In this document: positions 1,880 through 43,049 of the stretch, one piece after another
Position numbering within the stretch: position 1 is the stretch's first letter
Layout: each line of letters starts with the position of its first letter
Origin: Rhodosorus marinus CCMP1338
Taxonomy: Eukaryota > Plantae > Rhodophyta
Reading direction: 5' to 3'
DNA: 64,000 nt
Assembly: GCA_029953675.1 (NCBI GenBank)
Contig: JAMWBK010000013.1
Coordinates: forward strand, 806,001 to 870,000
Position numbers and translations under genes: made by a program
The notes under the pieces: generated by a model
Database searches by the model: none
The model's input: only the letters and a program-made list of their open reading frames with translations
Told to the model about the DNA's origin: nothing

Positions 1880-3057
1880 ATGTCTGCATGTGCTGTGGTA
1901 AGTCTAGGGTGTGTTTTCTCTCTCATTCTTGAGTTGAATTGGGAATGGGACTGCGTGGTTGGGTTGGGTTTTTGTTCCTGGGTTTCGAACTGTTTTTTTG
2001 CTGGAAGTTTGAGCGGGATTTTGCTTCCCTTTTTTTCTGGTTTGCAGAAGCGTTTGTCCGCAGAGCTGCGGAACGTCGAGAGGGATCCACCGCCTTATAT
2101 AACACCTCGACCGTTGCCCTCCGATATTTTGAAATGGTATTTTGTTATTCGAGGGCCGAAGGACACTCCATATGAGACGGGTATTTACATGGGGAAACTG
2201 GTATTTCCAGAAGATTACCCTTTCAAGCCTCCGGGTGAGCTGAGCTTTCATCTTGGATGCGTTTTCTTTGCTGCCTCCCCTGCTCCACAAATGCAGAATG
2301 CATACGTCCCTTCACGGGTCAATGTCGTGACCCGGGTTCCAAGACGATATGACCAGAGCTCTGTCTGAGAAAGGAGTTTCGTCTTCTTTTCTTATCGTTT
2401 GATCGTTGAACGGAGAAGCAATTTATATGTGCACTCCGAACGGAAGGTTTCGAACGAACGTGAAGCTTTGTCTTTCGATGTCAGATTTTCATCCGGAGAC
2501 GTGGAATCCTGTGTGGTCCGTGTCAGCGGTTTTGACAGGTTTGCTTTCATTTATGGTGGGCTCCGAGGACACTTTCGGTAGTATTGGGACATCTGAGGCT
2601 GAGAAAATGAAGATGGCAAAGGTATGGTTTATCAAGCAGTCCTAGTGGAATTCCCTAGTCTGAAGTACAAGTGATCATCTTCTCGCTTGTTCGTAGTGCT
2701 CCCACGAGTTCAACCAAAAGGACAGAATCTTCAAAGAACTGTTTCCAGATTTCATTAGGAATGGTGTGGAAAGAGGCGTACCTGGAAGAACCTCTGGCGA
2801 TTCCGTTAAGACAAAAACCTCCGGGGTAAGTTTCTTCGTACGTTCCTTTCCCCAGATTCAGCATCGAATGGGCTAAACCAAAATAGCAATTGTTCCACTT
2901 TCTCGGCCAATTCCAGCAGCTTCCCGAAGCTGATTCAAGAACGGGGAAGCCACCACAGGAAAGCGGGCTGGCGCTTATTTGGTGGATCGCCGTCCTGCTT
3001 GCCTTATGCTTTGGTGCCTGGAAGGTGTGCAGCGTGATTGGTGCATCGATGCCCTGA
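1880..3057 (+). CDS. UBC6: ER tail-anchored ubiquitin-conjugating enzyme (Ubc6/UBE2J family), about 5 exons
   Basis: KRLSAELRNVERDPPPYITPRPLPSDILKWYFVIRGPKDTPYETGIYMGKLVFPEDYPFKPP|AIYMCTPNGRFRTNVKLCLSMSDFHPETWNPVWSV.. and a last exon encoding a hydrophobic C-terminal anchor (GLALIWWIAVLLALCFGAWKV..MP*). Confidence 0.9.
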
Positions 3058-3272: not shown

Positions 3273-3518
3273 TCACCAAGGCCCGACCTGTGTACCAGCC
3301 GGAACGAAGTCTACCGTCTGCACACCCTGAACGGCGTTTACCGTCTGCGGGACACCCTGAACGAACGATGCCGGCTCCGCACCCTGAACGAAGCCTTCTG
3401 CGTGTGCCTGAACCTGAACGCCTAACTGAACTTTCTCAGCAAGATGAATTTTCTGCATCAATGGAACCGCCATTGTGAACCCTAGCAGCGTCACAGGAGC
3501 TAAAGCACACAACCTCAT
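3273..3518 (-). CDS. Small secreted peptide-repeat protein, paralog 1 (81 aa; diversified ..VQG repeats)
   Basis: MRLCALAPVTLLGFTMAVPLMQKIHLAE is nearly identical to the N-terminus of the 35430-36119 ORF. It is followed by degenerate units AEGFVQG/AEPASFVQG/VPQTVNAVQG. The upstream ~500 bp is also homologous between the two genes. Confidence 0.65.
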   Translation of the reverse strand: MRLCALAPVTLLGFTMAVPLMQKIHLAEKVQLGVQVQAHAEGFVQGAEPASFVQGVPQTVNAVQGVQTVDFVPAGTQVGPW

Positions 3519-4365
3519 CAACAATGTTGTTCAATCCCCTCCCTCTGCACGAACTAGAAAACTTCTGCCGACTATCTACAAACTCGTTTACTCCTGCCCA
3601 AATTCAAATCTGAGCACGTATCACAATCTCTGGTTCTGGCAATGTACGACTTGTCACATATCCCTCATCCATCGCATACCAATCCTCAGGAGGCATCCCT
3701 ATGCTTATAACCCCAGGCCACGTATCCTCGCAAAGATCGTGGACCTTGCGGGCATTAAACGGTAGATGGGCTGAGCACAAATGTTTTTGTCCCTATGCCG
3801 TACCCAAATGAGTGTATTTACAATCAGAAAATTTATTTAGTCCGCGTGGAGGTTGCAGTCACTCAGGTCATTGCTATAAGCGGAACGGGGTACATTTCTC
3901 CATCAAGGAAGCATCGAACTGTTTCTTACTATGGTGTATGAACACTGCTTTGATGCTGTAAGCGCGTAAAGACCCCGCGCCTCCAGGGACAAAGCACAGT
4001 CCTTTTGCCCCCCGTTTTGTTTCTATTAAAATTATATAGGTGTTTCCTTCCTTTAAGAAATGTACCTCGTCCTGTCAATTGCAATGACCTCAGTGACTTC
4101 AACCTCCACGCTGCCTGATTGTACCATCAGTGCTCTCGCGGTTGAGCTTTTTAAGAAGGCGTATTTGATCCGTTTGGAAGTCTTCACTGTAATTTTCATA
4201 TTCGTTAATAATAAAGAGATTTTGGCCTTTGCAAAAGCGAATAATTTTCTAACGTAATTCAATGTCTATTAATAGACTTATCCGTTTTAGGGCCTGTTGT
4301 GTGTCGCAACAGAAATTTAGTGGATGGACGGATTTGCTTTAGTCCGACTAAATAAATTCATTCAG

Positions 4366-6810: not shown

Positions 6811-6862
6811 ACGAATGGTTTAATCGGAGGCTGAAAAAAAAAACCCCGAGGGGAAAAAAAGA

Positions 6863-9800
6863 CTAAGCGCGGCGAAGTACTCGCGCCTCCAACATCAAAG
6901 CGGCATTCATGCGCCACAGCAGGAAACTTAAGCGGGTAAACAACGATTGAAGACGGTCAGGGCGTTCGCGGAACAACTCCCGAAGCCAGCGAGAACCAAC
7001 AGAGTCCATGAACCCAAAGCACTCAATGATCGGGGGTACCAAGCGATGTGCTAGTGCCGAAGCACGAACACCAAGGGAAGAGTAAGCCCCCGCGTATTTG
7101 ATCTCTTTGCGGCGTCTCATGCTGGCAGCGGCAGATCCACGGCGCTCCCCCGCAGCCGGGAGATAACGACTAGCTTGAGGGTTAGGAACAGCAAGATCAA
7201 CGTATGTGGTACGGCGGCTGTCGTCACAGGTGATCACCAGGTCGGCTACACGGCGTTCATCATTTTGAAAGTCCGCGACGGGTAAAGGTTTCTCACGTTC
7301 GATTTCCAGACCGGCTTGCCGGACTATAGGCCGAAATTCCCGGTATAACAGGTTCAAGATCCGTGTATGGCGGCGGGTTCGCTCGAACCCGCCGCCATAC
7401 ACGGATCCGAGCACCTTTCACCGCCGGGCAACTAGCGAGCAGGTGGGCGCCAAAATCTGCGTTGTCTTCAGTCTGAGAGCAGAGAGGGCACGACGAACCC
7501 ATCTCGTACGGCCAAGGGGGCTGATGTAAGCCGAGGTATAAGCGCAGTGAAGTACGCACTTCGAAATCCGACAGTGTGAGTGGCGGAAAGGCTGGTACGG
7601 TCATGAGCCACTGAGAGCTAATAACCCCTCCAAGACTACGTAGGCGGGCGCGAGCGCGAGGAGTCGGCCATATGCAGCACGGTGCAAGTCCCAAGAAAGG
7701 ATATTTTGCAGCGCATCCGTGCGTGCTTGAGCTCGGCTCCCAACGCGCTGGGAATCATCAGGAGGATCAACTGGAACTTCTTCTTCTGCGGCAACCACTG
7801 GGTCAATCTCCCCTAGAACAGGTTCAGGCGCAGGACGAATCCCCGGGGCGGAGCCTCGAGAGCGGTCAAATACAGCTCGCCAGTCAGGAAGACGGGGTTG
7901 AACGGTTTCGGGGAGACTAGTACAGGAATTCAGGGCGGTTTGGAGCTCCAGAAACAAGTCTTGGGCGCTTTCCGGTACGCTGGGAAGCAAGACACCCCGC
8001 GAGAGGCTCGCCATCAAATTGCGGAACTTCGAGATACCCAAGCTGCTCAAAGTGGGAAGTGCGGTTCCCCAGGCCCCTACTGCGGCTGCAGGTTGGACCA
8101 CAACACGATTGCAGAGGCCCAGTCCCCCCAATCGCAATGGGAGGCCTACCTGGGCGCGCACAACATCACAGGTGGGTCGCGGCAGAGCGCTCAGCTCTTC
8201 ATCGAGAAAATACCCCAGGTCACGGAAACTTTCAGCATCCGCACGAGTGGCCAACCACCGGCCCCAATGAGTTGGAAGTGAGCGAAGCCAATAGGTTAAC
8301 CGCTGACTGCAACAATACCGAAACAGCAACAACGCGCACTGGAGAAAGCCCGGAGGGAGCCGTCGAAGCTCTGCAACCAGCTGTCTGTGCTTACCGAGGA
8401 GCTGCAGCAACTCGCCTTCAACGAAGGACGGCGACCCGTAGGGGATGCCTAAGTGGACAAAACCATCCGGTCTCCAAATATCCTGGAACGACGCAGGTAC
8501 CTGCTGCTCTTGTGCAGCTACACCTCCCCAGTAGAACGATTTGTGATGATTAACCTCCAAGTCAACCCGCGAAGCCAAGGAGCGGAGACGATCATAAGCG
8601 AGCGCTAGAGTATCAGGGGGCCCCAGGAGGCACACGTCGTCGTGGTATGCAACCGTACGAACCTGCGGGAATTAGGAGCGAAGACAAAGCAAGACGAGTT
8701 GTAGTCCTCAGGCATGTAGGAAAGGGGACAAGGGATCTCCCTGTTGTACCCCTGTGCGCGCCGCAAACGTGTGTGAGGAAGCGCCAAGGGTGTCATAGGT
8801 AGCCCCACGACCAAGCGGAGAATAAAGTCTACTAACAAAGGGAAAGCCTACAGGGAAGACTTCGCGCACCACGTGCATGAGAGCCGGACGAGAGACGCGG
8901 TTGAACGCATTGGTAAGATCTACAGAGAGGAGCCCAGAATCTGGTGAGTACGCCATTTCCGAACGGAGTAAAACAGACAACAACTCACAGCCACCACGAT
9001 AGCCCACGCCTAACTGCACGTGCCCAAAGAAACGGCGGGATTCGGGAACCAGGATTTTCACTAACCATCGCGCCGCCAATTTGCGGACCACCTCAACCAG
9101 GCCAATAGGGCGAATAGCAGGGCTCGAGGCCGTGTGGCCGGGCTTCGAAAACAGACACAACTGCGAACGCCCGACCAAGAACCACGCACACTCACACAGG
9201 GGATCACCATTCACAAGCGCTTCGACCACCCACGCCAACGCCTTCAAACCTTCATCACTTAAGAAACGGAGATATTCCACCCGCAGCCCCGAGGGCCCTG
9301 GGGAACGGCCCTTCGGAGCATCATGAACCAACTCACGCACCGCCTCCAGATTGACCACTAACCGCGCACTGGGATGTGGCGCGGCGCGGTACTCTTCCAA
9401 CACTGATTCAAACGAGGAGTCCCAAGGGGAGCCTTCCGAGGGAAAGAGCAAACGGAGCGGTGAAGAAAGATCATCGGAGTATGGAACCACAGGTTGCCGC
9501 TGCTGGAGGATCCCGGCTGCCCGCCGCAGATCACCGCCTGCCACCGCGTGACGCGCCCGATTCTGTCGAGAAGACCTAAAAGCTGAGGGAGCACTAGGAG
9601 AAAAGGAAGAGAGAGAAGCGAAATAAAGACGTTCGAGGTCCTCAAAGTCGCCGGAAAGGAACATTTGCAGTTTTCGGCGAGGGTGGACCCGGCGAGGATG
9701 TGGGTTGAGGGGGACGGTAGAGGAGGTGAGCACGAGGCGGGGAAAAAAGAACAAGAGTTCCCAGCGAAGAGAGCAGTGAGGGTTCGCGGCGACCTGCTGC

Positions 9801-10012
9801 CAGAGAAAATCCAACACCAATCCTAGGGGCTTATGAAGTCGACGAGGGAGCCGTACGGCCGTGCTCTGACGATAAAGGGGAAGGGAACCGTCCGGGTAGG
9901 AGGCGACAAGGTGCGAAAACCACGAGAGAACACGCTCATGCCAGGCTGAGCGGTCACTGGTAAACAGGGGTAACCGGGACGACACGCACGCGGAGGAGGA
10001 AGACTCAGACAT
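6863..10012 (-). pseudogene. Family C ORF2 (RT-CCHC-RLE), disabled
   Basis: Comparison with the 31.7-34.3 kb copy shows TGT>TGA at ~8708, a ~23-nt deletion/frameshift near 7660 and an inverted fold-back insertion at ~7382-7409. Confidence 0.85.
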
Positions 10013-11303
10013 CGGGCCTCCCCTCAGTCGGGAAGGCAGATCGAATATCCGGAGGAGGTGCCTCGGAGGGAGGCTCAGGAGCCGCACGACGCTTACGTGG
10101 GGGGCGCACGAAGGAACTAAAAGACCTGAAGAAAGTAGACACAGGGTTTTCAGCAGCGGAGTCTTGACTGAGGGTGTCCAGAGCCAGCGGATTCGGAGAG
10201 GCCGATGGTGCTTCTGCCATGTCGGTGTCACGAGCCTCGGAGACAGGGCGAGGGGAGGAAGGGTGCTCAGGAGTCGGCGGCAGAAGGTCAAACGCAGGGT
10301 GGGCTTCCAGCAGGGTGGCCTCAGTGGAAAGGAAGGCCTCTAGCGCGGTGCGGAGGACCCCGCGAGGAGGAAAACGCGCGAAGAGGCTCGCCTGTATGCG
10401 CGAGAGCCGCGCCGCATGAGTGTGTAGCGCGACAACCGAAGCCTGCGAGGCATCCAGGTTTTGCAAGGCCGACGGAGGAACCCAGCCGGCGTCAAAACGA
10501 TCGAACTCGACAAACAAAGAGACATGAGGACGAGTCAGTATCATGTTGGCCAGAGCAGAGCGCTGGGGCGCGGGGGTGGTTACAAGCGATTGAAGGAACT
10601 GGTAAGCCGAGTCAGTAACAAGAAAACAGGCATGAGGGCCCGTGAAGTCCACATATAGGAATTCAGACGGGGCGACCGCAAGGGAGGAAGCCATGGTGTC
10701 GCGAAAATCGCGGTAGTGGACGGGCGCGCGGCCCCGACCACGAGAGGGGGTCTGGGGACGCACGTTCGTCATCCAAACAAAGTGGAACGGAGATAGTTGG
10801 CGAGAAGAGTCAATGGGGATGTGTTGTGGCATCATACGCACCATTGCCGTCGTGCGTTGTTCAGAAGAGCCCCTGCGCAGGACCTGCGAATAGGTCGGAC
10901 GTGGGGCACTGGAGGGAGCAGGATTCGGGCCCGACGCGGGCCCAGGAGGCGTCTGTCCTTGAATAGGGGTAGGCCAGTCGGAATCAGGAATGACCGGAGC
11001 GGAGCGCTCGGGTCGGGTGTAGGCAGGCCCCGCTGTACCGTGCGGATCCGCGGGGACGGGCACCGGGGGGTATGGGGCAGGCGCGGAGGCGGAGAAGCGC
11101 TCCAAATAGGCGATCAGCAGGGGCAGGCGGTGTTCCTGGGAAGCAGTCACAAGAAGACTCGTCAGTTTCGAGCAGATCCCATGGGCTAACTCGTCAGCGC
11201 AGTCCGTGAGGGTGGCCGCGGTACTCAACCCGCCTACGCTGAGCTCCACACGCGCTGAGAGAACGGCTCCGTCCGCCGGAATGGGTGGGGAAACCCGAGC
11301 CAT
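10005..11303 (-). CDS. Family C ORF1, ~432 aa Pro-rich putative nucleic-acid-binding (gag-like) protein
   Basis: Long open frame directly upstream of the RT ORF. Homologous blocks (TYSQVLRRG, HYRDFRD, PSEFLYVDFxGPHACFLV, VSLFVEFDRF) recur in family B (24.0-24.5 kb) and at 51.8-52.3 kb. Confidence 0.75.
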   Translation of the reverse strand: MARVSPPIPADGAVLSARVELSVGGLSTAATLTDCADELAHGICSKLTSLLVTASQEHRLPLLIAYLERFSASAPAPYPPVPVPADPHGTAGPAYTRPERSAPVIPDSDWPTPIQGQTPPGPASGPNPAPSSAPRPTYSQVLRRGSSEQRTTAMVRMMPQHIPIDSSRQLSPFHFVWMTNVRPQTPSRGRGRAPVHYRDFRDTMASSLAVAPSEFLYVDFTGPHACFLVTDSAYQFLQSLVTTPAPQRSALANMILTRPHVSLFVEFDRFDAGWVPPSALQNLDASQASVVALHTHAARLSRIQASLFARFPPRGVLRTALEAFLSTEATLLEAHPAFDLLPPTPEHPSSPRPVSEARDTDMAEAPSASPNPLALDTLSQDSAAENPVSTFFRSFSSFVRPPRKRRAAPEPPSEAPPPDIRSAFPTEGRPDV

Positions 11304-13400: not shown

Positions 13401-16029
13401 CTAGTCCTAGTCGTCGGACCGTGCTCGATGTGCAGCTTGACCAGACCATTTCCTGACAGATAAGCCACAGCAAGAAACCTAAGCGGGTAAACAACGAGGA
13501 CATAAGGGCTCGGCATGTTTCATTTATTTGCTACGTCTCATCATCGCAGCGGTAGTTCCACAGCGCTCTCCAGCAGCCGGCAAATAACGTCAGCCCGATG
13601 GTACAGGAAAAGCAACGTATTTAGTTCGACGGCTATCGTCACACTTGAACACGTGTAAGCTTACGACTTTACCTGGGCTTGCCGCAACCCCCTTGGCCTG
13701 TTGAGCGGGATGCTAGAGGCGCATTGTGCGGGGCCAATGTGCAGCGGGGTGATTATGGTGCGCATCTGTTGTTGTCTTGTGCGGAGGTTCAAGGGGCCCG
13801 GACCAGACGCCATACGCGGCTCAACCGCTTGCTTTTCCGCTACCTTCGTTCTCAATCGCTCGGTACGGGCCGAGAAGTGGAGTATGAGGTCCCTCTGGCC
13901 GTGGCATCGGAAATTGCTGATGAGGGTGACGCCCCAGCTGTACAGCGGGTGGCGGATTTCGTTGTGACTGACCTTAATGATGATCCGTTTATTCAGAGGC
14001 TAACTACCCTGAGAAGCGAGAGACAAGACGGTGATGCCGATCTCGAACTTCGTGTAAGCTTACGACTTTGCCTGGGCTTGCCGCAACCCCCTTGGCCTAT
14101 TGAGCAGGATTCTAGATGCGCATTGTGCCGGGCCAATGTGCCGTGGGGTGATTATGGTGCGCATCTGTAGGCGTCTTGTGCGGTGGTTCAAGGGGCCCGG
14201 ACCAGACGCCATACGCGGCTCAACCGCTTGCTTTTCCGCTACCTTCGTTCTCAATCGCTCGGTACGGACCGAGAAGTGGAGTATGAGGTCCCTCTGGCGG
14301 TGGCATCGGAAATTGCTGATGAGAGTGACGCCCCAGCGGTACAGCGGGTAGCGGATCTCGTTGTGACTGACCTCTATGCGTTTCGCAGTGAGTACATTGA
14401 CCTCTCCTTCCCTTGTCCTCAGGCGACCAGGTACCTGCCTGCGTCGGCTCGGCGTCGAGGAGCTGCAGCTCGGTCCATGCGGCAAGTTAAAGATTCGCAG
14501 TACGCGGCAGCGATGTCAAACCCTACCTTTCGCGATTCGGCGGTGACATACCGGTTCGTCCCCCTCATTATTGAGTGCTTTGGCTTGATAGATAGTGTAG
14601 GTTCTCGCTGGCTTCGAGCTCTGTTTCGCAACGACCCAGGGCGTTTAGATAGTCTGCTCACGGAGCCTTCTTTGACCCTGTGGTGCTCCAAATCTGCTTT
14701 GTTTGTGGACGCGCGTCATCAGCGTCTTGTTTCTCGCTTCTCAGGGTAGTTAGCCTCTGAATAAACGGATCTAAGATCACGCGCGTCCACAAACAAAGCA
14801 GAATTGGAGCGCCACAGGGTCATAGAAAGCTCCGTGAGCAGACTATCTAGGCGCCCTGGGTCGTTGCGAAACAGAGCTCGCAGCCAGCGAGAACCTACAC
14901 TATCTATCAAGCCAAAGTACTCAATGATGAGGGGGACGAACCGGTATGTCACCGCCGAATCGCGAAAGGTAGGGTTTGACATCGCTGCCGCGTACTGCGA
15001 ATCTTTAACTTGCCGCATGGACCGAGCTGCAGCTCCTCGACGCCGAGCCGACGCAGGCAGGTACCTGGTCGCCTGAGGACAAGGGATGGAGAGGTCAATG
15101 TACTCACTGCGAAGCGCATTGAGGTCAGTCACAACGAGATCCACCACCCGCTGTACCGCTGGGGCGTCACTCTCATCAGCAATTTCCGATGCCACCGCCA
15201 AAAGGACCTCATACTCCACTTCTCGGTCTGTACCGAACGATTGAGAACGAAGGTAGCGGAAAAGCACAGAGCAAGCGGTTGAGCCGCGGATGGCGTCTGC
15301 TCCGGGCCCCTTGAACCTCCGCACAAGACGCCAACGATGCGCACCATAATCACCCCACGGCACATTGGCCCCGCACAATGCGCATCTAGAATCCCGCTCA
15401 ACAGGCCAAGAGAGTTGCGGCAAACCCAGGTAAAGTCGCCCCTCACTGCGCGTCGCAGTGAGTGCATTGACCTCTCCATCTCTTGTCCTCAGGCGACCAG
15501 GTACCTGCCTGCGTCGGCTCGGCGTCGAGGAGCTGCAGCTCGGTCCATGCGGCAAGTTAAAGATTCGCAGTACGCGGCAGCGATGTCAAAACCTACCTTG
15601 CGCGATTCGGCGGTGACATATTGGTCCGTCCCCGTCATTATTGAGTGCTTTGGCTTGATAGATAGTGTAGGTTCCCGCTGGCTGCGAGCTCTGTTTCGTA
15701 ACGACCCAGGGCGTTTAGATAGTCTGCTCACGGAGCTTTCTTTGACCCTTTGGCGCTCCAAATTTGCTTTGTTTGTGGACGCCCGTCATCAGCGTCTTGT
15801 CTCTCGCTTCTCAGGGTAGTTAGCCTCTGAATAAACGGATCTTCTTCTTCTTCTTGAAGACGAGGTCTGCCTAGGCGATCGTTATTTTGGCAATGAGTGC
15901 ATTTAGTGAAAGACACGGGCGTGTCTGGTTCAATTTCAAGACCGATTTGCGAAGGTCAGGTCGAGTCAGTGCTTCATCCGATGCGAAGTCCAATCGACAA
16001 GAACTAAGTTTGAATGAATTAAAGTAAAG

Positions 16030-20024: not shown

Positions 20025-23000
20025 ATCCATTTATTCAGAGGCTAACTACCCTGAGAAGCGAGAGACAAGACGCTGATGACGCGCGTCCACAAAGCATAGT
20101 TGGAGCACCACAGGGTCAAAGAAAGTTCCGTGAGCAGACTATCTAAACGCCCTGGGTCGTTGCGAAACAGAGCTCGCAGCCAGCGAGAACCTACACTATC
20201 TATCAAGCCAAAGCACTCAATAATGAGGGGGACGAACCGGTATGTCACCGCCGAATCGCGAAAGGTAGGGTTTGACATCGCTGCCGCGTACTGCGAATCT
20301 TTAACTTGCCGCATGGACCGAGCTGCAGCTCCTCGACGTCGAGCCGACGCAGGCAGGTACCTGGTCGTCTGAGGACAAGGGATGGAGAGGTCAATGTACT
20401 CACTGCGACGCGCATTGAGGTCAGTCACAACGAGTTCCGCCACCCGCTGTACCGTTGGGGCGTCACTCTCATCAGCAATTTCCGATGCCACTGCCAGAAG
20501 GACCTCATACTCCACTTCTCGGTCCGTACCGAGCGATTGAGTACGAAGGTAGCGGAAAAGCAAGTGATTGAGCCGCGCGCGCGTCTGGTCCGGGCCTCTT
20601 GAACCTCCGCACAAGACGCCAACAGATGCGCACCATAATCACCCCACGGCACATTGGCCCCGCACAATGCGCATCTAGAATCCTGCTCAACAGGCCAAGG
20701 GGGTTGCGGCATACCCACTTAAAGTCGTAAGCTTACACGAAGTTCGAGATCGGTAAGCGCCAACCGCGGATACGCAGGTATGACCGTGAAGAGACGGGAG
20801 CTGAGACCCCCCCCGAAACCGCGCAGGCGAGCTAAAATCGACGCCGAGCACGAAGGTAAACTCAGAAGGATGGCATACGAGTGCCGATGTATGTCCCACG
20901 AAGGGTTTTTTGTGGATTAACTCGGTCCTCGAAGGGGCCGGACCCAACCGGGAAACGCCCTCCTCTGGCCGTCTCAACGGCACAGCCACGGCGTCAACAT
21001 CCTCGGCGGTTTCTACACCATTTCCAACACACGGTGCTGCAGCAGAGACTCCCGAACGCTGGCCACCGAGGGAGTCAAGAACTGCCCCCCAGGAATCGCA
21101 ACGAGCCACTCGGCACGGCGGTACATTGTTGAAAAGGCGGCCTCCAGTTCCGCAAAAAACCCCCCGAGCCGTTGGGCGAGAGTCCCGTCCAGCCGCCCAA
21201 CCCGAAGTCCATTCAACAAACCACTCACATGCGGATCACACTCCGTAGACCATGTACTAAGCGCATTGGCCCACGAACTCACCACAGCCGCCGGCTGGAT
21301 CGCCGCGTAAGATCCCACAGCCAGCCCGCCCAACCGCACGGGCAACGCGATCTGCCGGTGAAGGACGTCCTTTTCTGCATCCCCGAAAACAGATAGCTCA
21401 GCATCCATCAGCGTGCCTAGCACGTCCCTCGCTCGTCGGTCTGCGCGGAGCGCCAGCCAAGACCCCCACTCGGAGGATAGCTGCCGCAAAAAATAGGTCA
21501 GCCTCTGGCACGCGCTGAACCGGAAGATGAGCAGAGCGGTCTGGAGGTACCCTTCTGGGAGACTGCACAGCTCAGCCAGGAGCTCATCATGATGACTCAG
21601 GAGCGCGGAGAGGCTGCGTTCAACAAATATCGGGGTGCCTACGGGGACACCGAACAGAAGGAAGCCCTCAGCTCGCCGAATTTCTCGGAACCTGGATGGA
21701 ACCGCGTCCGCGGTGCAGTGAGACCACCCCCCCCCCAGAAGTCGCACTTGGCATGGTTGATACGCAGCCCCACCAAGGAAGCCACCTCGCCGAGAAAATC
21801 ATAGGCCGGCACCAGATCGTCGGGAGTGCCAAGAAGCGTCACATCGTCATGGAAGGCGACTGCACGGACCCGCGGGAACTGATGTTTCAGCCGCAACAGC
21901 ACCAGTTGCAATCCACAGGCGTGCAGGAACGGCCCTAAGGGATCGCCCTGCTGCACACCCGTATGAGCCGCAAAGGTGTGGCTCTCGGCACCCAAGGTGA
22001 CAAATCGGGGCCCGTTCGGCGCTTCACCATATACGCGGCGTAAGAACGGGAAGCCAGAGGGGGAAAGCTGACGAACTACCTCAAGCGCGTGTGCTCGAGA
22101 CACACTGTTAAACGCGTTGGCGAAATCCACAGAAAGCGTGCCCAAGGGCTCATCGCGGAGACCGTCCAGCTGCAGGATACGCGTTATAAGTTTACAGCCA
22201 CCTGAATAGCCGACACCGACCTGGGTCAACTCAAAAAAAACCCTGGCCTCCCTAGTGAGCTGACGCGATAGAAAGCGGCTCGCCAGCTTCCGCAATGCTT
22301 CGCACATCCCGATTGGCCGAAGGGAAGGCGTCTGGTCGGAATGTCCAGGTTTGGGCAAGAGGACCAGTTGGGAGCGCGACAATAGTGCCCAGGCCTCTCC
22401 GCAAAAATCGTCCCCATTGACAAGACCCTCCAGTACCCGCGCAAGGGCGTCCAGCCCTTCTTCACCCAACCAGTGAAAAAGTTCGACCCGGAGTCCTGAG
22501 GGACCAGGTGCACGACCTTTCCGGGCGGACCGGAGCAGAGCCAGAACCTCATCCGGCCGAACAAGCAACCGACCCCTACCGCGTGAGGAATCGACAAAAG
22601 GATGTAAGACACGCTGGAACTCAGAGTTCCAACTCACGTCGCGCGCAGGGAACAACGCGGCGACTGGATCAGCCAGGTCAGTCCGATACGGCTCGACTGA
22701 AGCGCCTTGCGGGAGGATGGCCGCCCCACGCCGAATATCCCCCTGTGCCACTGCTGCCTTTTCCCGTACCTGCCTACGGGAACGAGAAGAAGGTGAAGTC
22801 CCGCACGAAGTGGATCTCGTTGTGACTGACCTCAATGCGCGTAGCAGTGAGTACATTGACCACTCCATCCCTTGTCCTCAGGCGACCAGGTACCTGCCTG
22901 CGTCGGCTCGACGTCGAGGAGCTGCAGCTCGGTCCATGCGGCAAGTTAAAGATTCGCAGTACGCGGCAGCGATGTCAAACCCTACCTTTCGCGATTCGAC

Positions 23001-31673: not shown

Positions 31674-34258
31674 TGAATGGTTTAATCGGAGGCTGAAAAA
31701 AAACCCCGAGGGGAAAAAAAGACTAAGCGCGGCGAAGTACTCGCGCCTCCAACATCAAAGCGGCATTCATGCGCCACAGCAGGAAACTTAAGCGGGTAAA
31801 CAACGATTGAAGACGGTCAGGGCGTTCGCGGAACAACTCCCGAAGCCAGCGAGAACCAACAGAGTCCATGAACCCAAAGCACTCAATGATCAGGGGTACC
31901 AAGCGATGTGCTAGTGCCGAAGCACGAACACCAGGGGAAGACAAAGCCCCCGCGTATTTGATCTTTTTGCGGCGTCTCATGCTGGCGGCGGCAGATCCAC
32001 GGCGCTCCCCCGCAGCCGGGAGATAACGACTAGCTTGAGGGTTAGGAACAGCAAGATCAACGTATGTGGTACGGCGGCTGTCGTCACAGGTGATCACCAG
32101 GTCGGCTACACGGCGTTCATCATTTTGAAAGTCCGCGACGGGTAAAGGTTTCTCACGTTCGATTTCCAGACCGGCTTGCCGGACTATAGGCCGAAGTTCC
32201 CGGTATAACAGGTTCAAGATCCGTGTATGGCGGCGGGTTCGAGCACCTTTCACCGCCGGGCAACTAGCGAGCAGGTGGGCGCCAAAATCTGCGTTGTCTT
32301 CAGTCTGAGAGCAGAGAGGGCACGACGAACCCATCTCGTACGGCCAAGGGGGCTGATGTAAGCCGAGGTATAAGCGCAGTGAAGTACGCACTTCGAAATC
32401 CGACAGTGTGAGTGGCGGAAAGGCTGGTACGGTCATGAGCCACTGAGAGCTAATAACCCCTCCAAGACTACGTAGGCGGGCGCGAGCGCGAGAAGATGAG
32501 ACCATCTGCGCGAGGAGTCGGCCATATGCAGCACGGTGCAAAGTCCCAAGAAAGGATATTTTGCAGCGCATCCGTGCGTGCTTGAGCTCGGCTCCCAGCG
32601 CGCTGGGAATCATCAGGAGGATCAACTGGAACTTCTTCTTCTGCGGCAACCACTGGGTCAATCTCCCCTAGAACAGGTTCAGGCGCAGGACGAATCCCCG
32701 GGGCGGAGCCTCGAGAGCGGTCAAATACAGCTCGCCAGTCAGGAAGACGGGGTTGAACGGTTTCGGGGAGACTAGTACAGGAATTCAGGGCGGTTTGGAG
32801 CTCCAGAAACAAGTCTTGGGCGCTTTCCGGTACGCTGGGAAGCAAGACACCCCGCGAGAGGCTCGCCATCAAATTGCGGAACTTCGAGATACCCAAGCTG
32901 CTCAAAGTGGGAAGTGCGGTTCCCCAGGCCCCTACTGCGGCTGCAGGTTGGACCACAACACGATTGCAGAGGCCCAGTCCCCCAATCGCAATGGGAGGCC
33001 TACCTGGGCGCGCACAACATCACAGGTGGGTCGCGGCAGAGCGCTCAGCTCTTCATCGAGAAAATACCCCAGGTCACGGAAACTTTCAGCATCCGCACGA
33101 GTGGCCAACCACCGGCCCCAATGAGTTGGAAGTGAGCGAAGCCAATAGGTTAACCGCTGACTGCAACAATACCGAAACAGCAACAACGAGCACTGGAGAA
33201 AGCCCGGAGGTAGCCGACGAAGCTCTGCAACCAGCTGTCTGTGCTTACCGAGGAGCTGCAGCAACTCGCCTTCAACGAAGGACGGCGACCCGTAGGGGAT
33301 GCCTAAGTGGACAAAACCATCCGGTCTCCAAATATCCTGGAACGACGCAGGTACATGCTGCTCTTGTGCAGCTACACCTCCCCAGTAGAACGATTTGTGA
33401 TGATTAACCTCCAGGTCAACCCGCGAAGCCAAGGAGCGGAGACGATCATAAGCGAGTGCTAGAGTATCAGGGGGCCCCAGGAGGCACACGTCGTCGTGGT
33501 ATGCAACCGTACGAACCTGCGGGAATTCGGAGCGAAGACAAAGCAAGACGAGTTGTAGTCCACAGGCATGTAGGAAAGGGGACAAGGGATCACCCTGTTG
33601 TAGCCCTGTGCGCGCCGCAAACGTGTGTGAGGAAGCGCCAAGGGTGTCATAGGTAGCCCCACGACCAAGCGGAGAATAAAGTCTACTAACAAAGGGAAAG
33701 CCTACAGGGAAGACTTCGCGCACCACGTGCATGAGAGCCGGACGAGAGACGCGGTTGAACGCATTGGTAAAATCTACAGAGAGGAGCCCAGAATCTGGGG
33801 AGTACGCCATTTCCGAACGGAGTAAAACAGACAACAACTCACAGCCACCACGATAGCCCACGCCTAACTGCACGTGCCCAAAGAAACGGCGGGATTCGGG
33901 AACCAGGATTTTCACTAACCATCGCGCCGCCAATTTGCGGACCACCTCAACCAGGCCAATAGGGCGAATAGCAGGGCTCGAGGCCGTGTGGCCGGGCTTC
34001 GAAAGCAGACACAACTGCGAACGCCCGACCAAGAACCACGCACACTCACACAGGGGATCACCATTCACGAGCGCTTCGACCACCCACGCCAACGCCTTCA
34101 AACCTTCATCACTTAAGAAACGGAGATATTCCACCCGCAGCCCCGAGGGCCCTGGGGAACGGCCCTTCGGAGCATCATGAACCAACTCACGCACCGCCTC
34201 CAGATTGACCGCTAACCGCGCACTGGGATGTGGCGCGGCGCGGTACTCTTCGAACACT
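31674..34258 (-). mobile_element. Family C 5'-truncated copy (~2.6 kb) with 7-bp TSD GTATGAA
   Basis: Nearly identical to 6818-9400. RT AYHDD and RLE present, with small frameshifts. GTATGAA at 31667-31673 and 34259-34265. (TTCA)n tail. Confidence 0.92.
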
Positions 34259-34544
34259 GTATGAAGGTATTTTCAATAGAAAAAAAACGAGGGGAAAAAA
34301 AGACTATGCACGGCAAAGATCGCGGACCTCCAGCATCAAAGCAGTGTTCATACGCCATAGTAAGAAACAAGTCGCTGCTTCCTTGATGGAGAACTATTCC
34401 CCGTTCCGACAATAGCAATGACCTGAGTGACTGCAACCTCCACGCTGACTAAATGAATTTTCCGATTGGTAGTAGACTCATTTGGGTGGGGTATAAGGCA
34501 CGCCGCATGGGGGCCTGCCTGATCCTACCTGGGAAAGTACTTGA

Positions 34545-34815
34545 ATGAAGATAGAAAATTACTTTCTATTCTGTTGTGACCGGACTTAAAACGCCAATCA
34601 ATGTTGATTGGAGTAGAAGGTTTTCAAGATTTTCATGGAAGTTTCATTGGTTGTTGGTTGTCCCAATGAAGATAGAAAATTACTTATTATTCTGTTGTAG
34701 GTTGACCTGACTTAAAACACCAATCAATGTTGATTGGAGTAGAAGGTTTTCAAAATTTTCATGGAAGTTTCATTGGTTGTTGGGATAACCAACAACCAAT
34801 GAAACGTTTCCATGC
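34545..34815. repeat. Two tandem ~125-bp units ending in a hairpin
   Basis: gaagatagaaaattact..ccaatcaatgttgattgg..tttcatggaagtttcattggttgttgg occurs twice, followed by a 17-bp inverted repeat at 34767-34805. Confidence 0.75.
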
Positions 34816-35429
34816 GGTATAGGGAAAAAAACATTGGTCCTCAGCCATCTTACCGATGTACATTTCTGCAAGGAAAGAAACACTTGCGTAAACTTCAATA
34901 GAAAACAAAACGAACGCATAAAAACAGACTCCGCTTTTATGCTGGAGGTGCGTAAAGATCGTTCGCCTTCCAGCATCAAAGCAGTGTTCATACGCCAAAG
35001 TAAGAAACCAGTCGGTGCTAACTTGATGGAGAAATAAGCCCGTTCCGACAATAGCAATGACCTGAGTGAGTGCAACCTCCACGCTGCCTAAATGAATTTT
35101 CTGATTGTAAATAGACTCATTTGGGTGGGATATAGGGCACGCCTCTTGGCGGCATAGGGACAAAAAACATTGGTCCTCAGCCATCTTACCGTTCAGTACC
35201 TGCTCACAAGGTCCACGATCTTTGCGAGGATACGCGGCCTGGGGTTATAAGTAAGCCGATGCTTCCTGAGGATTGGGATGCGTTGGAGGAGGGATATGTG
35301 ACAAGTCGTACATTGCCAGAGCAGGGATTGTGATAAGCGCTCAGATCTGAATTTGGGTAAACGAGTTTGTAGGCAGTTGGCAGAAATTTGGGAAAGTTGT
35401 CTAGTTCGTGAGGAGGGAGCAGATTGAAT

Positions 35430-36119
35430 ATGATGAAGTTGTGTAGTTTAATTTTTGTCACCCTGTTAGGGTTCACAATGGCGGTTCCCTTGATGCAGAA
35501 AATTCATCTTGCGGAGCCGGCAGCCTTCGTTACGGGTGCGGAACCGGCAGCCTTCGTTACGGGTGCGGAGCCAGCAGCCTTCGTTACGGGTGCGGAACCG
35601 GCAGCCTTCGTTACCGGTGCGGAACCGGCAGCCTTCGTTACCGGTGCGGAACCGGCAGCCTTCGTTACCGGTGCGGAACCGGCAGCCTTCGTTACGGGTG
35701 CGGAACCGGCAGCCTTCGTTACCGGTGCGGAGCCGGCAGCCTTCGTTACCGGTGCGGAGCCGGCAGCCTTCGTTACCGGTGCGGAGCCGGCAGCCTTCGT
35801 TACCGGTGCGGAACCGGCAGCCTTCGTTACCGGTGCGGAACCGGCAGCCTTCGTTACCGGTGCGGAGCCGGCAGCCTTCGTTACCGGTGCGGAGCCGGCA
35901 GCCTTCGTTACCGGTGCGGAGCCGGCAGCCTTCGTTACCGGTGCGGAACCGGCAGCCTTCGTTACCGGTGCGGAACCGGCAGCCTTCGTTACGGGTGCGG
36001 AGCCGGCAGCCTCCGTTACGGGTGCGGAACCGGCAGCCTTCGTTACCGGTGCGGAACCGGCAGCCTTCGTTACGGGTGCGGAGCCAGCAGCCTTCGTTAC
36101 GGGTGCGGAGGTAAAGTAG
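35430..36119 (+). CDS. Secreted tandem-repeat peptide precursor-like protein, paralog 2: signal/leader + (AEPAAFVTG)x22 + AEVK
   Basis: Hydrophobic N-terminus MMKLCSLIFVTLLGFTMA shared with the paralog at 3273-3518. The frame is open through the whole array. A TATA-like TTATAA lies ~190 nt upstream in both paralogs. Confidence 0.75.
   Translation: MMKLCSLIFVTLLGFTMAVPLMQKIHLAEPAAFVTGAEPAAFVTGAEPAAFVTGAEPAAFVTGAEPAAFVTGAEPAAFVTGAEPAAFVTGAEPAAFVTGAEPAAFVTGAEPAAFVTGAEPAAFVTGAEPAAFVTGAEPAAFVTGAEPAAFVTGAEPAAFVTGAEPAAFVTGAEPAAFVTGAEPAAFVTGAEPAASVTGAEPAAFVTGAEPAAFVTGAEPAAFVTGAEVK
35511..36104 (+). repeat. 27-bp minisatellite, 22 units (GCGGARCCRGCAGCCTTCGTTACSGGT)
   Basis: Read directly: 594 bp = 22 x 27, no spacers. 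Confidence 0.97.
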
Positions 36120-36329
36120 TGACCCTGAGGAGGAGCCAGCATCCCACGTTCAGGCTGAGTATCCTGCAGCTGGGGTTGAATGAAAATTCCCACACAGAAA
36201 CAATTCGCTGTAATGTTGGATACCCGAGATCGTATGCTCAATAACTTGAACTAGAGTGAATTTTTTAACCAACTGCGCCCGCTTGCTGCAGCCACGTTGC
36301 GCTAGTCTAAGCATATTAAACAAATGCTT

Positions 36330-38688: not shown

Positions 38689-41600
38689 CTACAGTTTCTC
38701 CTTGCACGCACACACGGTCTCGCTTTCCGTGACAAACGCGAATTCCTTGGTGCGCACGACCGTAGGATATTGAGGTGAGTTGCGAAGCGACGGAACCAGG
38801 CGAGCACGTGGTAGAAGAGTGCGCAATGCGGGTGCGGGAAGACTTACCCCAAGGCCTGTACTCATAGGACATCGGTCACCCAGAACCCTATCAGTGTGGT
38901 TGCAAGTTCCGGGGCCGCGACAAACCACGTTGTAGCATCGATTTGCTTCAAAACCGGTCTCACAAGTACACTTGCTTGGATCGCTCACATCCTCAACGAC
39001 CGTCTGCATATAAACAAAGAGGAAAATGAGAATGTCAGAAGGCGGCACCAACACCGGAGCGCACAAACCTCTCTTCCAAACGCCTCCATTGCCTTCTTAT
39101 TCACACTTACTCCAAGACGTGCTCTGTCGTGACAAGTATCACCAGGATTCGCATATGCGGCGATAGTAGTACCTGACGGACCACCGGAGCCCTCGCTCAG
39201 TTTGAATCGATAACTGCATTGCTGCGTCGCGCATGTGCATTCGCCCGGATTGTCACCCGGAGTGAGAAGCTGGTTTCGAAAACGAGCGGTTGATGAAACA
39301 TTAGTCAGCGGAGATGTCTCCTACTTCCCCCTGGTCTAAAGAGCATCGGTTTTGCATACTCCTGTGCTATCCCCATCGGTCTTTGGCACACAGATGTCTC
39401 CAATTTTGCCTTGCTGTGGCGAGCATCCCGCAATTCCAGCCGGACAATCAATGTTGACACACTTTTGCGTGCATTTACAATTGCCCCGCTGGTCCACAGT
39501 GATGACCTTCGCATCCGGAAGAAGACAGAAAACACAAAACCGTACGTGAGCTTTTGAGGCTTTGGCCTTTCCTTGAACCTTCACTGTCAAGCATACAACC
39601 AAACAAAAAAAAAAAAGACTCACCCCGTTTCCGTTATCGCAGGGTTCTCCAAACTCGCCCTCAAAAGTCTCACAGCCATCTCCTTCGCAGCTTGATAGAG
39701 TGCACTTATCAAGCCGGCAGCGACAGGAAATGAAATCTCCCGGATGGGATTCAACCACCACCTGTATTCCGAATACAGGAACGTTTCCTGAAAGCTCAGT
39801 CTAGATCTTTTTCTCGGTTCTCTTATCGCCGGAGATCGCATGTATCGAGGTACTCACGCCTGCCAACGGACCGACAGCACATCCATAACCGGGAATGCCA
39901 TCAAGAGCACCATTAGTTGTTTTCTGATTGCAAGAATTTTCGCACCTGCATAATCCTCCACCGCTTGCTCGCTTAAGAGTCTTCCAAAACGGTAAAACAA
40001 ACCAAGCAGGAAAGAAAGGGGAGGTTAAGTAGGTCATGACCTTCGTCCATTCCTCAAGAAAGCGCGACCATCATCTAACGTACCAGGGTCTGAAGGTAGT
40101 CGCTAATACACTCTTCCCCAACAGGAATACATCCAGCATCGCGATGGTAACATTGTGAGCTCGGACAGTCCTCGACGGACTGACAGAAACACACTCCTTC
40201 ATCCCCAACGACCCCCGTAGCGACCTAACCCAAGCCAATTAAGGAAATAGAAAAGCAGGAGGACAAGGCAGCGGTCAGTAGATGTGAAACGGATTCGACT
40301 GCAACCCTAGGCACAACACGTGTTTGGCCAAGTGAACTGACCCCTTCAATCGAGCCCTCTTGAAGGGTGCACCTTTCGCCAGTGTAAGTGTCACAGTTTC
40401 TCGTGCACTCGGGACTCTGCAGGGTGCACTGAATCGCGCAAGCACACGCGCCGGAATGCTTGTCCTGGACCAGGTTCTATGCAAAGAGACAAACATTGCT
40501 CCTCCATAAGACGCAAGAAACATCCCCTCGCCCCTCAACATGTTGAACATCTTTTCGGGAGGCCCTACCCCGCTTCCAAAATCTTCAGTGCAACTATCTC
40601 CAGCGCTTTGGCCGGTGAACTTACAGCCAAGGACTCCCGGCGGACACTGACAAGTTCTTGTTTGTTGACATTCACAATCATACTCTCCCACAGGTTCTGC
40701 GAGCGGCAAGAGCACCTGTGGCAAAGGTGGAAGCGACCTCGGTTCAACTCTCAAAACAATCACGCTCGAGAGAAAGACCGTGGCAAGATCCCTACTCCGG
40801 ACGCATCCCAGTTTGTACAGGAGTTCCTATAGGGCTCATCCTGTATAGCCCTCGGATAACTACGACTATCATCAAGTGTGGAGTTCCGCTCGTAGTTGCA
40901 TTGATTATTGATTTCAAGGGCCGGTGCACAGTAGCAGATCCCTTCGTCCTTCTCAAGGAGAACCTGCAGAAGGGAAACAAACATATCATTTTTGTCCTTC
41001 CCTTAGCAAATTGTGTCAAGAGCAGTTGCCATGCTTCCGCGGGAACTTCTTTACCCCTTCAACAGATCCATCAACACCCACCACTGTGGAGCTACACGCT
41101 TGACCGCCATATCCTTTGGCTACACACTCCGGACAACCCAAGGGGTCAGGAATGTACTCGCACGGTGCAGTACATGAGCACTAGGGGGTCCGCATTCAAA
41201 GCAAAGAGAAAGAGTGAGGATACGTGGGCCAGTTTCTCAAGCTCGTGTTTGGGGAGCTGAGCGGCTTACGAATCTCATGCCTGGTCGGTAGGCCCCGTCG
41301 GGAAGCGCCAGCACGACCTGGAAGTTTGGAGACACGTCCAGGGACGAATTGGTGAGATTGCCTTATCGCAGACACTTCTTTGGAACAAATTCTTCTGCAA
41401 TTTGTTTTCATATCTTGCTCTTACCCCAGGGGCTCCCGCCGCGCTCGTACAGACCTGTCCCGCTATCGAGTTGTAGACTTCGATATCCGTGGCAAGGCTA
41501 TCTGAGACCACCGTGCACGTCAGCCCACCCAACTCCTCACAGCTACATTGATTAGTGGTCGTCCCGAGTACACGTTTCACCGTCCCGAACTCGCCACACG

Positions 41601-42596
41601 CATCTCCTGGGTACAGCTCTTCGCAGTCTGGCTGTCCAGCTAACCCGCAAGAGTCGAAGGTACACTGCGCAGGTTCCTCGCACGGTTGGCATACACAGTC
41701 GGCAGTGACTTTAGAACCTTTTTGGAGGGTCTAATCACGAAACGAGAACGAGGTTAGGATACTTTCCCTGAAACCAACACATCCGTGCGAGTTCCCAAAC
41801 TCACTCCAAGGTCTCCGAAATGATCACATGATTCGTTGATCCGCGCATTCCTCAAGGTGCAGTCGATCGGTGCTACCAAAGACCCCACATGGGGACAGGT
41901 AGAGACGATGCAGGTTCCTCCAGAGATACCAGTCTCGTCCAATGGGCACCCGCTGCAGGTGAAATCCATCTCACAGATCCTTTGCTTTGTGCCCGCCCTT
42001 CGTTTGCAAAAGGCCGTAACGCTGGTACCACCTGAGGGATGGACAGTCATTTGCTTTGGGACATTGCCAGCGTAAGTCGTCGGACCGACTACAGCGGTCC
42101 ACATGACAATGATCCCGTCACGGCAACAGTCGCGATCGATCTCATCGAGCGCCAATACGAGGGTATGCTTTTCGACCTCCTTCGGGAATGATTCGCTCGT
42201 AGCGTACGCTTCATCAAAGTCTGTCGGGATTTCATCTTCCGTGGCATAAACGCCGCCGCGGACTTGCGTGAATCCAAAACCAATATCATCAATTTTAAAC
42301 CTAAGTTCAACCTTGTCCCCGTCTTCATTCAGCGCTACGCAGACCCGTCCCATCCGCCTTGGGACGCCGGATAGGTCGAATCCGGCAATGCGCTTTCGCC
42401 TCAACAGAGGCCGACATTTTTTAGTACTCGTCGAGTCCACTCCAAGCCTCACTAGACCCGCCCTTGACAGGGATGCTGCACAAGATACCCCATCCGTCTC
42501 CCTTACCGAAGCCTTCAACGATACAGGAGAAGCATAGCATAACCCCACAAACAGCGAAACCACAACGCCTATCCGCAGATTCCTCATCCCCATCAT
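38689..42596 (-). CDS. Large multi-exon secreted Cys-rich repeat protein (signal peptide, ~200-aa N-terminal domain, then repeated C-x(5-6)-C..GD-x-C..CxC modules); exon structure only partly resolved
   Basis: MRNLRIGVVVSLFVGLCYA signal. Successive ORF pieces CPHVGSLVAPIDC..ESC, CPPGVLGCKFTGQSAGDSC, CPAGIAGCSPQQGKIGDIC and CRGPGTCNHTDRVLGDRC are separated by GT-AG introns. Confidence 0.7.
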
Positions 42597-43049
42597 TTTC
42601 TCTCGCCCATCCACCAACCAGCTCGCTACCGGCCGCCTTGACTTTTGCACGCTTTCGTTCCGCGTTCCTAGCTTGTATTACGCCCTTCGTAGCGCGTAAA
42701 ACCACCAACCAGATCAGAATAACGATAGCGAAAGTGACGTCCCTCGTCCTAATCCAAACCGCTTCCTAACACCCGGCGAACGAGTGGCTAAGTAGTAACA
42801 TTTTCATGTTTCCAGCAGACAGACCCATTCTCCTCACAACTCAATCACAGATCCTAATCCTAACCAATTGCAAGTAAAACCGTTATTATTCGTCTGGCAA
42901 AAAAGTATAAAAAAGAGTAAAATGGAAACGACTTTGGGGGGGGGGGGGTATCCAGCTCCCGCACGTGCAGAGACCAAATAAAAATTAAAAACTTGGCCTG
43001 TTAATGTAGAATTCCTTACCAAATCACTTCTCTAAAATGAAATTTGCTT

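Follow-up and report, generated by a model that had tools for sequence, protein, structure and literature searches.

Two open reading frames (ORFs) in the 64-kb stretch of Rhodosorus marinus CCMP1338 DNA analysed here (hereafter the window), one near 3 kb and one near 35 kb, share a leader and a nine-residue repeat pattern. The best explanation, which we hold with better than even though not high confidence, is that they belong to a Rhodosorus family of secreted, acidic, 9-residue-repeat proteins that act intact, whose arrays were reshaped by repeat turnover and whose two loci in the window are the arms of an old inverted duplication.

Two Repeat-Protein ORFs with a Common Leader

The features of the two ORFs are as follows.

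3273 to 3518, minus strand: 3-kb paralog ORF, 81 aa plus stop, comprising the leader, four to five diverged nonapeptide-type units and TQVGPW
3468 to 3518, minus strand: putative signal peptide of the 3-kb copy, MRLCALAPVTLLGFTMA, with putative cleavage after T-M-A
3296 to 3405, minus strand: diverged repeat units of the 3-kb copy, four copies spaced 27/30/27 nt and 69-81% alike (repeat search)
35430 to 36119, plus strand: 35-kb paralog ORF, 229 aa plus stop, comprising the leader, 22 x AEPAAFVTG and AEVK
35430 to 35483, plus strand: putative signal peptide of the 35-kb copy, MMKLCSLIFVTLLGFTMA, mean hydropathy 1.82
35510 to 36109, plus strand: tandem array, 27-nt unit, 22.2 copies, 96% matches (TRF)

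The 3-kb frame is open over 3273-3524 (minus strand) with its ATG at 3518, and its translation is MRLCALAPVTLLGFTMAVPLMQKIHLAEKVQLGVQVQAHAEGFVQGAEPASFVQGVPQTVNAVQGVQTVDFVPAGTQVGPW. Read in parts, the protein consists of MRLCALAPVTLLGFTMAVPLMQKIHLAE followed by KVQLG, VQVQAH, AEGFVQG, AEPASFVQG, VPQTVNAVQG, VQTVDFVPAG and TQVGPW, so that the diverged repeat units with V-x-G endings listed in a preliminary description of this DNA are indeed present (four to five units). TRF did not report the units at the 3-kb locus, their divergence being too high. An ORF of 99 aa overlaps the 3-kb copy on the opposite strand.

The 35-kb frame is open over 35424-36119 (plus strand), with ATGs at 35430 and 35433, and encodes MMKLCSLIFVTLLGFTMAVPLMQKIHLAE followed by 22 x PAAFVTGAE and VK. 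The “AE” previously taken to close the leader belongs to the first unit, which it opens; when it is assigned to the units the leader becomes MMKLCSLIFVTLLGFTMAVPLMQKIHL, followed by 22 x AEPAAFVTG and AEVK. Only four positions in the 594 nt of the 22-unit array are polymorphic, three of them third codon positions and one a singleton F to S change, and the 22 units have the same amino-acid sequence except for one residue. This near-homogeneity points to a recent expansion of one unit. The array (198 aa) contains no K and no R, hence no dibasic site. Two further ORFs cross it in other frames (35504-36241, minus strand, 245 aa; 35509-36114, plus strand, 201 aa) and are open only because the repeat unit has no stops.

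Relatives and Distribution

Two relatives of these ORFs provide the transcript link of the family. The first, a transcriptome-derived peptide of 135 aa (P0001; MMETSP, sample not stated), has the same leader and the same unit types, and consists of MMRSCILVFVTLVGFTMAVPLMEKIHL, the units LDTVDSVEG, AKLAAHVQA, AETVDLVEG and AEPAASVVS, the insert YYDPYYNTLSGESKVSVED, the units AEQAARVQA, AMTVDLVEG, AETVDLVEG and AEPAVLVEG, and GKLGGCKGTAECHDCCP. It thus comprises eight 9-residue units, a Tyr-rich insert and a Cys-rich C-terminal tail, with one R in a unit and K/R in the non-repeat parts. The second (P0070) is a 33-aa fragment from R. marinus MMETSP0315 that reads MAVPLMEKIDL, VETADLVQG, AEPTAFVQG and EDAM. 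Within the window, neither an exon downstream of GAG/GTAAAG at the end of the 35-kb array nor a Cys-rich tail like that of P0001 was found, and tblastn recovered no third leader-bearing copy.

A filter-only HMMER scan of 1.84 billion representative proteins yielded no leader-bearing protein beyond P0001 and P0070. A 45-column leader profile retrieved P0070 only, and the A2 profile in a word-indexed database retrieved P0001 only. Some 108 further HMMER matches (snail, phage-tail-like and others) were rejected as low-complexity look-alikes, matching in the repeat part only and having no leader. The leader (VTLLGFTMAVPLMQKIHL), searched as a degenerate DNA pattern, had no match in JGI metagenome contigs, nor did exact-sequence look-ups of the 35-kb ORF, the 3-kb ORF, P0001, P0070 and two neighboring ORFs in an assembly collection, and no account of such proteins in Rhodosorus was found in the literature. 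So far as searched, the family looks restricted to Rhodosorus, with at least four members.

An Inverted Duplication with Retroelements between Its Arms

The near-exact leader match of the two ORFs, noted previously, is borne out (24/28 aa and 72/84 nt identical), and the similarity continues for ~550 nt past the leader into the 5' flank. A blastn alignment of 679 nt pairs 3435-4069 with 35516-34854 in inverted orientation at 78.5% identity (E = 6e-110), far beyond chance. The two copies are the arms of an inverted duplication of ~680 bp. The flanks common to both are given below.

3519 to 4069, minus strand: 5' flank on the 3-kb side, a promoter/5'UTR candidate whose distal part is repeat- or TE-derived
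34854 to 35429, plus strand: 5' flank on the 35-kb side (pairwise alignment with the 3-kb flank)

The copies agree at 85.7% of nucleotides in the leader, at 87% in the 300 nt next to it upstream and at 83.5% across 560 alignment columns of the upstream flank. The leader is therefore not the better conserved part, as had been supposed, relative to its immediate flank (85.7% vs 87% in the 300 nt upstream). The preliminary description had named three findings that would have to coincide to overturn it (only two copies in existence, an untranscribed 3-kb copy and a leader conserved no better than the flank); the last of the three is what we observe. The flank itself carries non-triplet indels and a neutral substitution pattern.

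The distal flank is a dispersed repeat, with further copies of 3802-3958 (3-kb flank) within the window. In the 35-kb flank a 186-nt piece is duplicated (34329-34514 vs 34969-35153, 89%), and the same piece matches 3802-3958; this repeat family is also present beside reverse transcriptase (RT)-encoding elements. Between both copies of the 186-nt piece, a 126-nt unit is repeated 1.9 times in tandem at 34544-34783.

The two genes point away from each other across ~31-32 kb rich in retroelement ORFs and nested repeats. From ~4400 to 34300 this interval is packed with retroelement remains, including three ORFs with RT domains by Pfam.

8708 to 10291, minus strand: RT-domain ORF
21639 to 22868, minus strand: RT-domain ORF
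32932 to 34257, minus strand: RT-domain ORF

Near-identical segments ~24.86 kb apart (6836-8424 vs 31696-33278, 98-100%) also lie here, as do many long inverted repeats, for example one with 492-nt arms at 14229-14720 and 14775-15266 (96%).

We propose that the coding start and ~550 nt of 5' flank were copied together in an old inverted segmental duplication, and that retrotransposons would later have filled the space between the arms. The unique sequence of the duplicated block would then have diverged at the ordinary substitution rate, by ~15%. Coding minisatellite arrays change through slippage and unequal exchange, and the minisatellite-like coding array of this family may likewise turn over fast, through unequal exchange or slippage during replication. 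On this view the 35-kb array would have recently expanded and been homogenized to 22 copies of one unit, with the 3-kb copy keeping a short array of old, diverged units. The appearance of the same leader with different repeats would thus arise because the array turns over quickly while unique sequence diverges at the ordinary rate. If this is correct, the locus pair provides a small, clean case in which a coding minisatellite mimics the pattern of a conserved leader and hypervariable cores in the absence of diversifying selection, and a caution for screens that seek peptide precursors by sequence only.

Coding Constraint and Reading Frame

Evidence that the ORFs encode protein comes from the distribution of differences between the copies. 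In leader codons 9-28 there are five synonymous and no nonsynonymous differences between the 3-kb and 35-kb copies (pS 0.35, pN 0). With 24% synonymous sites, five of five synonymous changes would occur by chance with P about 8e-4, a figure to be read in light of the small number of substitutions (five) and of boundaries chosen post hoc. The seven nonsynonymous changes in the leader all fall in codons 2-8, which correspond to the n- and h-region of the signal peptide. Over the whole leader pN/pS is 0.40; in the best conserved frame of the upstream flank it is about 0.9. That upstream frame (KVHDLCEDT..) was considered as an exon and rejected, given this ratio, a 1-nt alignment gap directly after it and a shifted frame. 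The indels in the coding part of the alignment measure 33 and 3 nt, both multiples of three, and those in the flank are mostly not. The sense frame is the only one open in both copies, since the antisense register without stops along the 35-kb array is interrupted by six of them in the 3-kb copy. One antisense register shares third codon positions with the sense frame in the 27-nt array, and the third-position polymorphisms of the array are for this reason ambiguous by themselves. Judged from the pattern of codon changes, leader residues 9-28 are under amino-acid constraint.

These observations bear on whether either ORF is a gene at all. A GC-rich 27-nt minisatellite within a transposon-associated duplicate could be open by construction, the “leader” being no more than adjoining duplicated DNA. 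Three frames are open across the 35-kb array, the 3-kb copy is overlapped by the 99-aa ORF on the opposite strand, the flank is as conserved as the leader and in its distal part belongs to the repeat family found also beside RT-encoding elements, and the 35-kb ORF has no database protein, all of which such an origin would accommodate. It would not, however, account for P0001 and P0070 joining the same leader in frame to the same unit types, for an ATG followed by signal-peptide-like sequence in all three full-length members, or for a synonymous-only pattern in the leader against a neutral flank with the sense frame alone open in both copies, and we regard it as very unlikely. The earlier suggestion that both ORFs are real genes of an undescribed family is upheld by the P0001/P0070 relatives and by the synonymous-only codons 9-28 beside a neutral flank (pN/pS about 0.9).

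A narrower doubt concerns the 3-kb copy, which might be a decaying relic of the duplication that is open by chance, with function confined to the 35-kb gene or to the loci that encode P0001 and P0070. The copy has only 81 aa, with a degenerate array (units 69-81% alike) and a non-repeat tail at its end, most of its acidic residues have been lost (pI 5.36 vs about 4.1), the core of its signal peptide has undergone I to A and F to P replacements, and it has been annotated only as part of a chimera. Yet the ORF runs unbroken from its ATG to its stop and has kept its frame through ~15% divergence, the indels that set it apart from the 35-kb copy preserve the frame, its N-terminus retains strong hydrophobicity (2.05), and the five of five synonymous substitutions in codons 9-28 would not be expected under free drift of one lineage. 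We therefore consider decay of the 3-kb copy a serious but minority possibility.

Protein Architecture

All three full-length members begin with an n-region containing K/R, a hydrophobic core of 12-13 residues (hydropathy 1.8-2.05) and T-M-A at positions -3 to -1. On composition and the -3/-1 rule, residues 1 to 17 or 18 resemble a signal peptide. In the 3-kb copy, residues 3-18 have a mean Kyte-Doolittle hydropathy of 2.05 with small residues at -3/-1, although, compared with the 35-kb copy, its hydrophobic core has A for I and P for F. AlphaFold places an N-terminal helix in the 35-kb protein (residues 2-22) and in P0001. We infer that the products are exported from the cell, each gene encoding an endoplasmic reticulum signal peptide that would probably be cut after ..GFTMA, followed by the VPLMQKIHL stretch and a run of 9-residue units. 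The stretch after the signal peptide, VPLM[QE]KI[HD]L (~9 residues; VPLMQKIHL in both window copies), is the most conserved part of the family.

The units follow the pattern A-E-[P/T/Q]-[A/V]-x-hydrophobic-V-x-G with a strict 9-residue period, and two unit themes, AEP[AT][AS]xVxG and xxT[VA]DxVxG, recur in all four members. The best-matching units between the paralogs are 7/9 identical, about as similar as the leaders. The cores had been described as hypervariable, which is difficult to reconcile with two themes common to four members and with a 35-kb array made uniform as 22 copies of a single unit. The 3-kb copy has V-P, V-Q and T-Q in place of the A-E unit boundary. Apart from His, its mature product has just two basic residues, K22 within the conserved stretch and K29 within the first diverged unit (AEKVQLG), and neither lies in a dibasic pair. 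The predicted mature pI is 5.36 for the 3-kb copy and 4.05 and 4.15 for the other two full-length members.

One of five AlphaFold models of the 35-kb protein has a strand (AAFVT) and a turn (GAEP) every nine residues in a beta-solenoid-like arrangement, with a pLDDT of 86.8; the other four are poor. For P0001 the pLDDT is 47.9 and the solenoid-like fold is not reproduced. Foldseek found only weak beta-helix look-alikes in the PDB (E >= 0.6), and a PDB sequence search was empty. We distrust the beta-solenoid-like fold, because only one of five models is confident, a perfect repeat was folded without an alignment, P0001 disagrees and there is no PDB match. The only Pfam match on the array, the suprabasin GxHH repeat (PF21009), scored 34.9 bits against a cut-off of 31 and was dismissed as compositional, the array having no histidine.

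The preliminary description saw in these genes the hallmark of a peptide-precursor family, in which nonapeptides would be released as signaling, pheromone, toxin or RiPP-like peptides, the cores evolving under positive selection and the leader being kept for recognition. A signal peptide, a short conserved pro-region and many fixed-length units do resemble multi-core precursors. The units end in a conserved G and mostly begin with A-E, points at which some non-canonical protease might conceivably cleave, and crude pN/pS reaches about 1.15 in the units vs 0.40 in the leader. The former value, from a crude Nei-Gojobori comparison of four arbitrarily paired units (pN 0.31, pS 0.27), has few sites behind it and is compatible with relaxed or neutral change, which leaves the proposed diversifying selection on the cores indistinguishable from neutrality. 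Processing of the array faces further difficulties: it has no K/R or dibasic site in the 35-kb protein, and the A-E boundary is replaced in the 3-kb copy. Moreover, the 22 near-identical units of the 35-kb protein and the themes common to all four members do not describe hypervariable cores, the leader DNA is no better conserved than neutral flank, P0001 has non-repeat segments, and no peptidase, DUF3328, tyrosinase or cyclase-type gene was detected among the 18 other long ORFs of the window. With neither basic sites in the 35-kb array, nor an A-E boundary in the 3-kb copy, nor a maturation enzyme detected in the window, the hallmark finds no support, and we judge the release of peptides unlikely. 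A specific form of this idea, that Rhodosorus makes secreted AEPAAFVTG-type nonapeptides, possibly cyclized or modified, from multi-copy precursors via non-dibasic processing, seems to us similarly improbable. If true, these precursors would be the first multi-core peptide-precursor system in red algae, one in which gene copies differ in core themes and copy number.

Most likely, the proteins function without being cut, in the extracellular matrix or on the cell surface. We propose this because they have no processing sites, the A-E boundary has been lost in the 3-kb copy, and the Tyr-rich insert and Cys-rich tail of P0001 would be unneeded by a string of cores. Should such intact proteins prove abundant in the extracellular matrix of Rhodosorus, they would offer an entry point to its little-known protein component.

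Annotation Status

The public gene models of the CCMP1338 nuclear assembly (GCA_029953675.1; the window lies on contig JAMWBK010000013.1) were built by BRAKER with RNA-seq data (PMC10250338). Searches of protein databases returned nothing identical or nearly identical to the 35-kb ORF, which thus seems to be missing from these models. The last 75 residues encoded by the 3-kb ORF recur unchanged at the C-terminus of KAJ8900921.1 (P0002; NDN08_000219, Rhodosorus marinus), a protein labeled “reverse transcriptase domain-containing”, which is a chimeric gene model assembled from three pieces.

9664 to 8861, minus strand: P0002 residues 1-268, inside a multi-copy retrotransposon RT ORF
7484 to 7416, minus strand: P0002 residues 262-284, a short middle piece
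3500 to 3276, minus strand: P0002 residues 285-359, the 3-kb repeat-protein ORF as last exon

The last two pieces are joined over an “intron” of ~3.9 kb, and RNA-seq-trained BRAKER used the 3-kb ORF only inside this model. The present analysis brings to light an orphan gene family that the genome annotation of this red alga misrepresents, one copy having no database protein and the other being fused to a retrotransposon ORF.

Other Genes in the Window

A gene for a ubiquitin-conjugating enzyme (UQ_con), with one intron or more (1880-2645, plus strand), converges on the 3' end of the 3-kb ORF, and a second UQ_con gene lies just outside the start of the window (locus L001, 16608-19726). Beyond the 35-kb ORF, a run of Cys-rich ORFs with no Pfam match (38689-42650, minus strand) includes CKCTQKCVNIDCPAGIAGC and CECQQTRTCQCPPGVLGC, and the upstream one begins with the signal-peptide-like MRNLRIGVVVSLFVGLCYA. 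No exact product of these ORFs is on record; together they may form a single gene, split by introns, whose Cys-rich product would be secreted. Two ORFs for alpha/beta-hydrolases of the platelet-activating-factor acetylhydrolase type (PF03403; 46891-48198 and 54381-55745, both plus strand) lie 7.5 kb apart and are ~86% identical over the 300 nt compared. Ordinary housekeeping genes occupy the right end of the window, namely an aladin-like WD40 ORF (57846-58805, plus strand) and a cullin gene over two ORFs (61520-63321, plus strand), split probably by an intron or frame change near 62611.

Comparison with Known Systems

RTX nonapeptide beta-roll repeats (PMC3034196, PMC6891781) share the nine-residue period of the Rhodosorus units, and one AlphaFold model of the 35-kb protein likewise has a strand and turn per nine residues. 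However, the calcium-binding RTX consensus GGxGxDxUx is absent, AEPAAFVTG having one G and no D, and the 35-kb protein has no RTX/HemolysinCabind match in Pfam. RTX proteins leave bacteria by type I secretion and carry their signal at the C-terminus (PMC3034196, PMC6891781), unlike the Rhodosorus protein, which is eukaryotic and has a predicted N-terminal signal peptide; the fold prediction behind the likeness is not robust.

Multi-core precursors processed by Kex2, such as yeast alpha-factor, fungal KEPs and dikaritins of the ustiloxin/phomopsin type, resemble the Rhodosorus proteins in combining a signal peptide, a short pro-region and many fixed-length units. In the Kex2 type, dibasic KR/RR sites lie on either side of every core, and maturation genes cluster with the precursors of the RiPP types. 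In contrast, the 35-kb array has no basic residue, and no maturation neighbor was detected: Pfam searches of the 18 other long window ORFs returned only RT, hydrolases of the PAF-AH type, cullin and WD40, and no DUF3328/UstYa, tyrosinase, macrocyclase or prolyl oligopeptidase, a survey that intron-split genes may escape.

Families with a conserved prepro region, such as conotoxins and the amphibian dermaseptin type, also have paralogs that share an N-terminal secretory leader and differ downstream. Unlike in these families, the Rhodosorus leader is no more conserved than the adjacent non-coding DNA, and the downstream part differs mainly by repeat turnover in which two conserved unit themes are reused. 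The Rhodosorus genes are, moreover, a single exon-like block with no pro/mature cleavage site.

By this comparison, the Rhodosorus family would work most like the lineage-specific secreted tandem-repeat proteins encoded by coding minisatellites. Such proteins include mucin-type repeat domains, the repeats of fungal Flo/Als adhesins and Plasmodium circumsporozoite-type repeats. There is no sequence relationship to any of these, the Rhodosorus unit being nine residues long, acidic and A/E/P/V/G-rich rather than Ser/Thr/Pro-rich, and the Rhodosorus proteins differ further in being very small (7-20 kDa mature) and in having no anchor signal or adhesion domain. The organization is nevertheless alike: a signal peptide is followed by an in-frame tandem array, the units vary fast in number and sequence between paralogs while the unique N-terminus stays, and near-identical units within one array indicate recent expansion or homogenization. 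The arrays of the Rhodosorus family are in frame and differ between paralogs (27 nt x 22.2 in the 35-kb copy, 27/30/27 in the 3-kb copy and eight units in P0001), as is characteristic of coding minisatellites.
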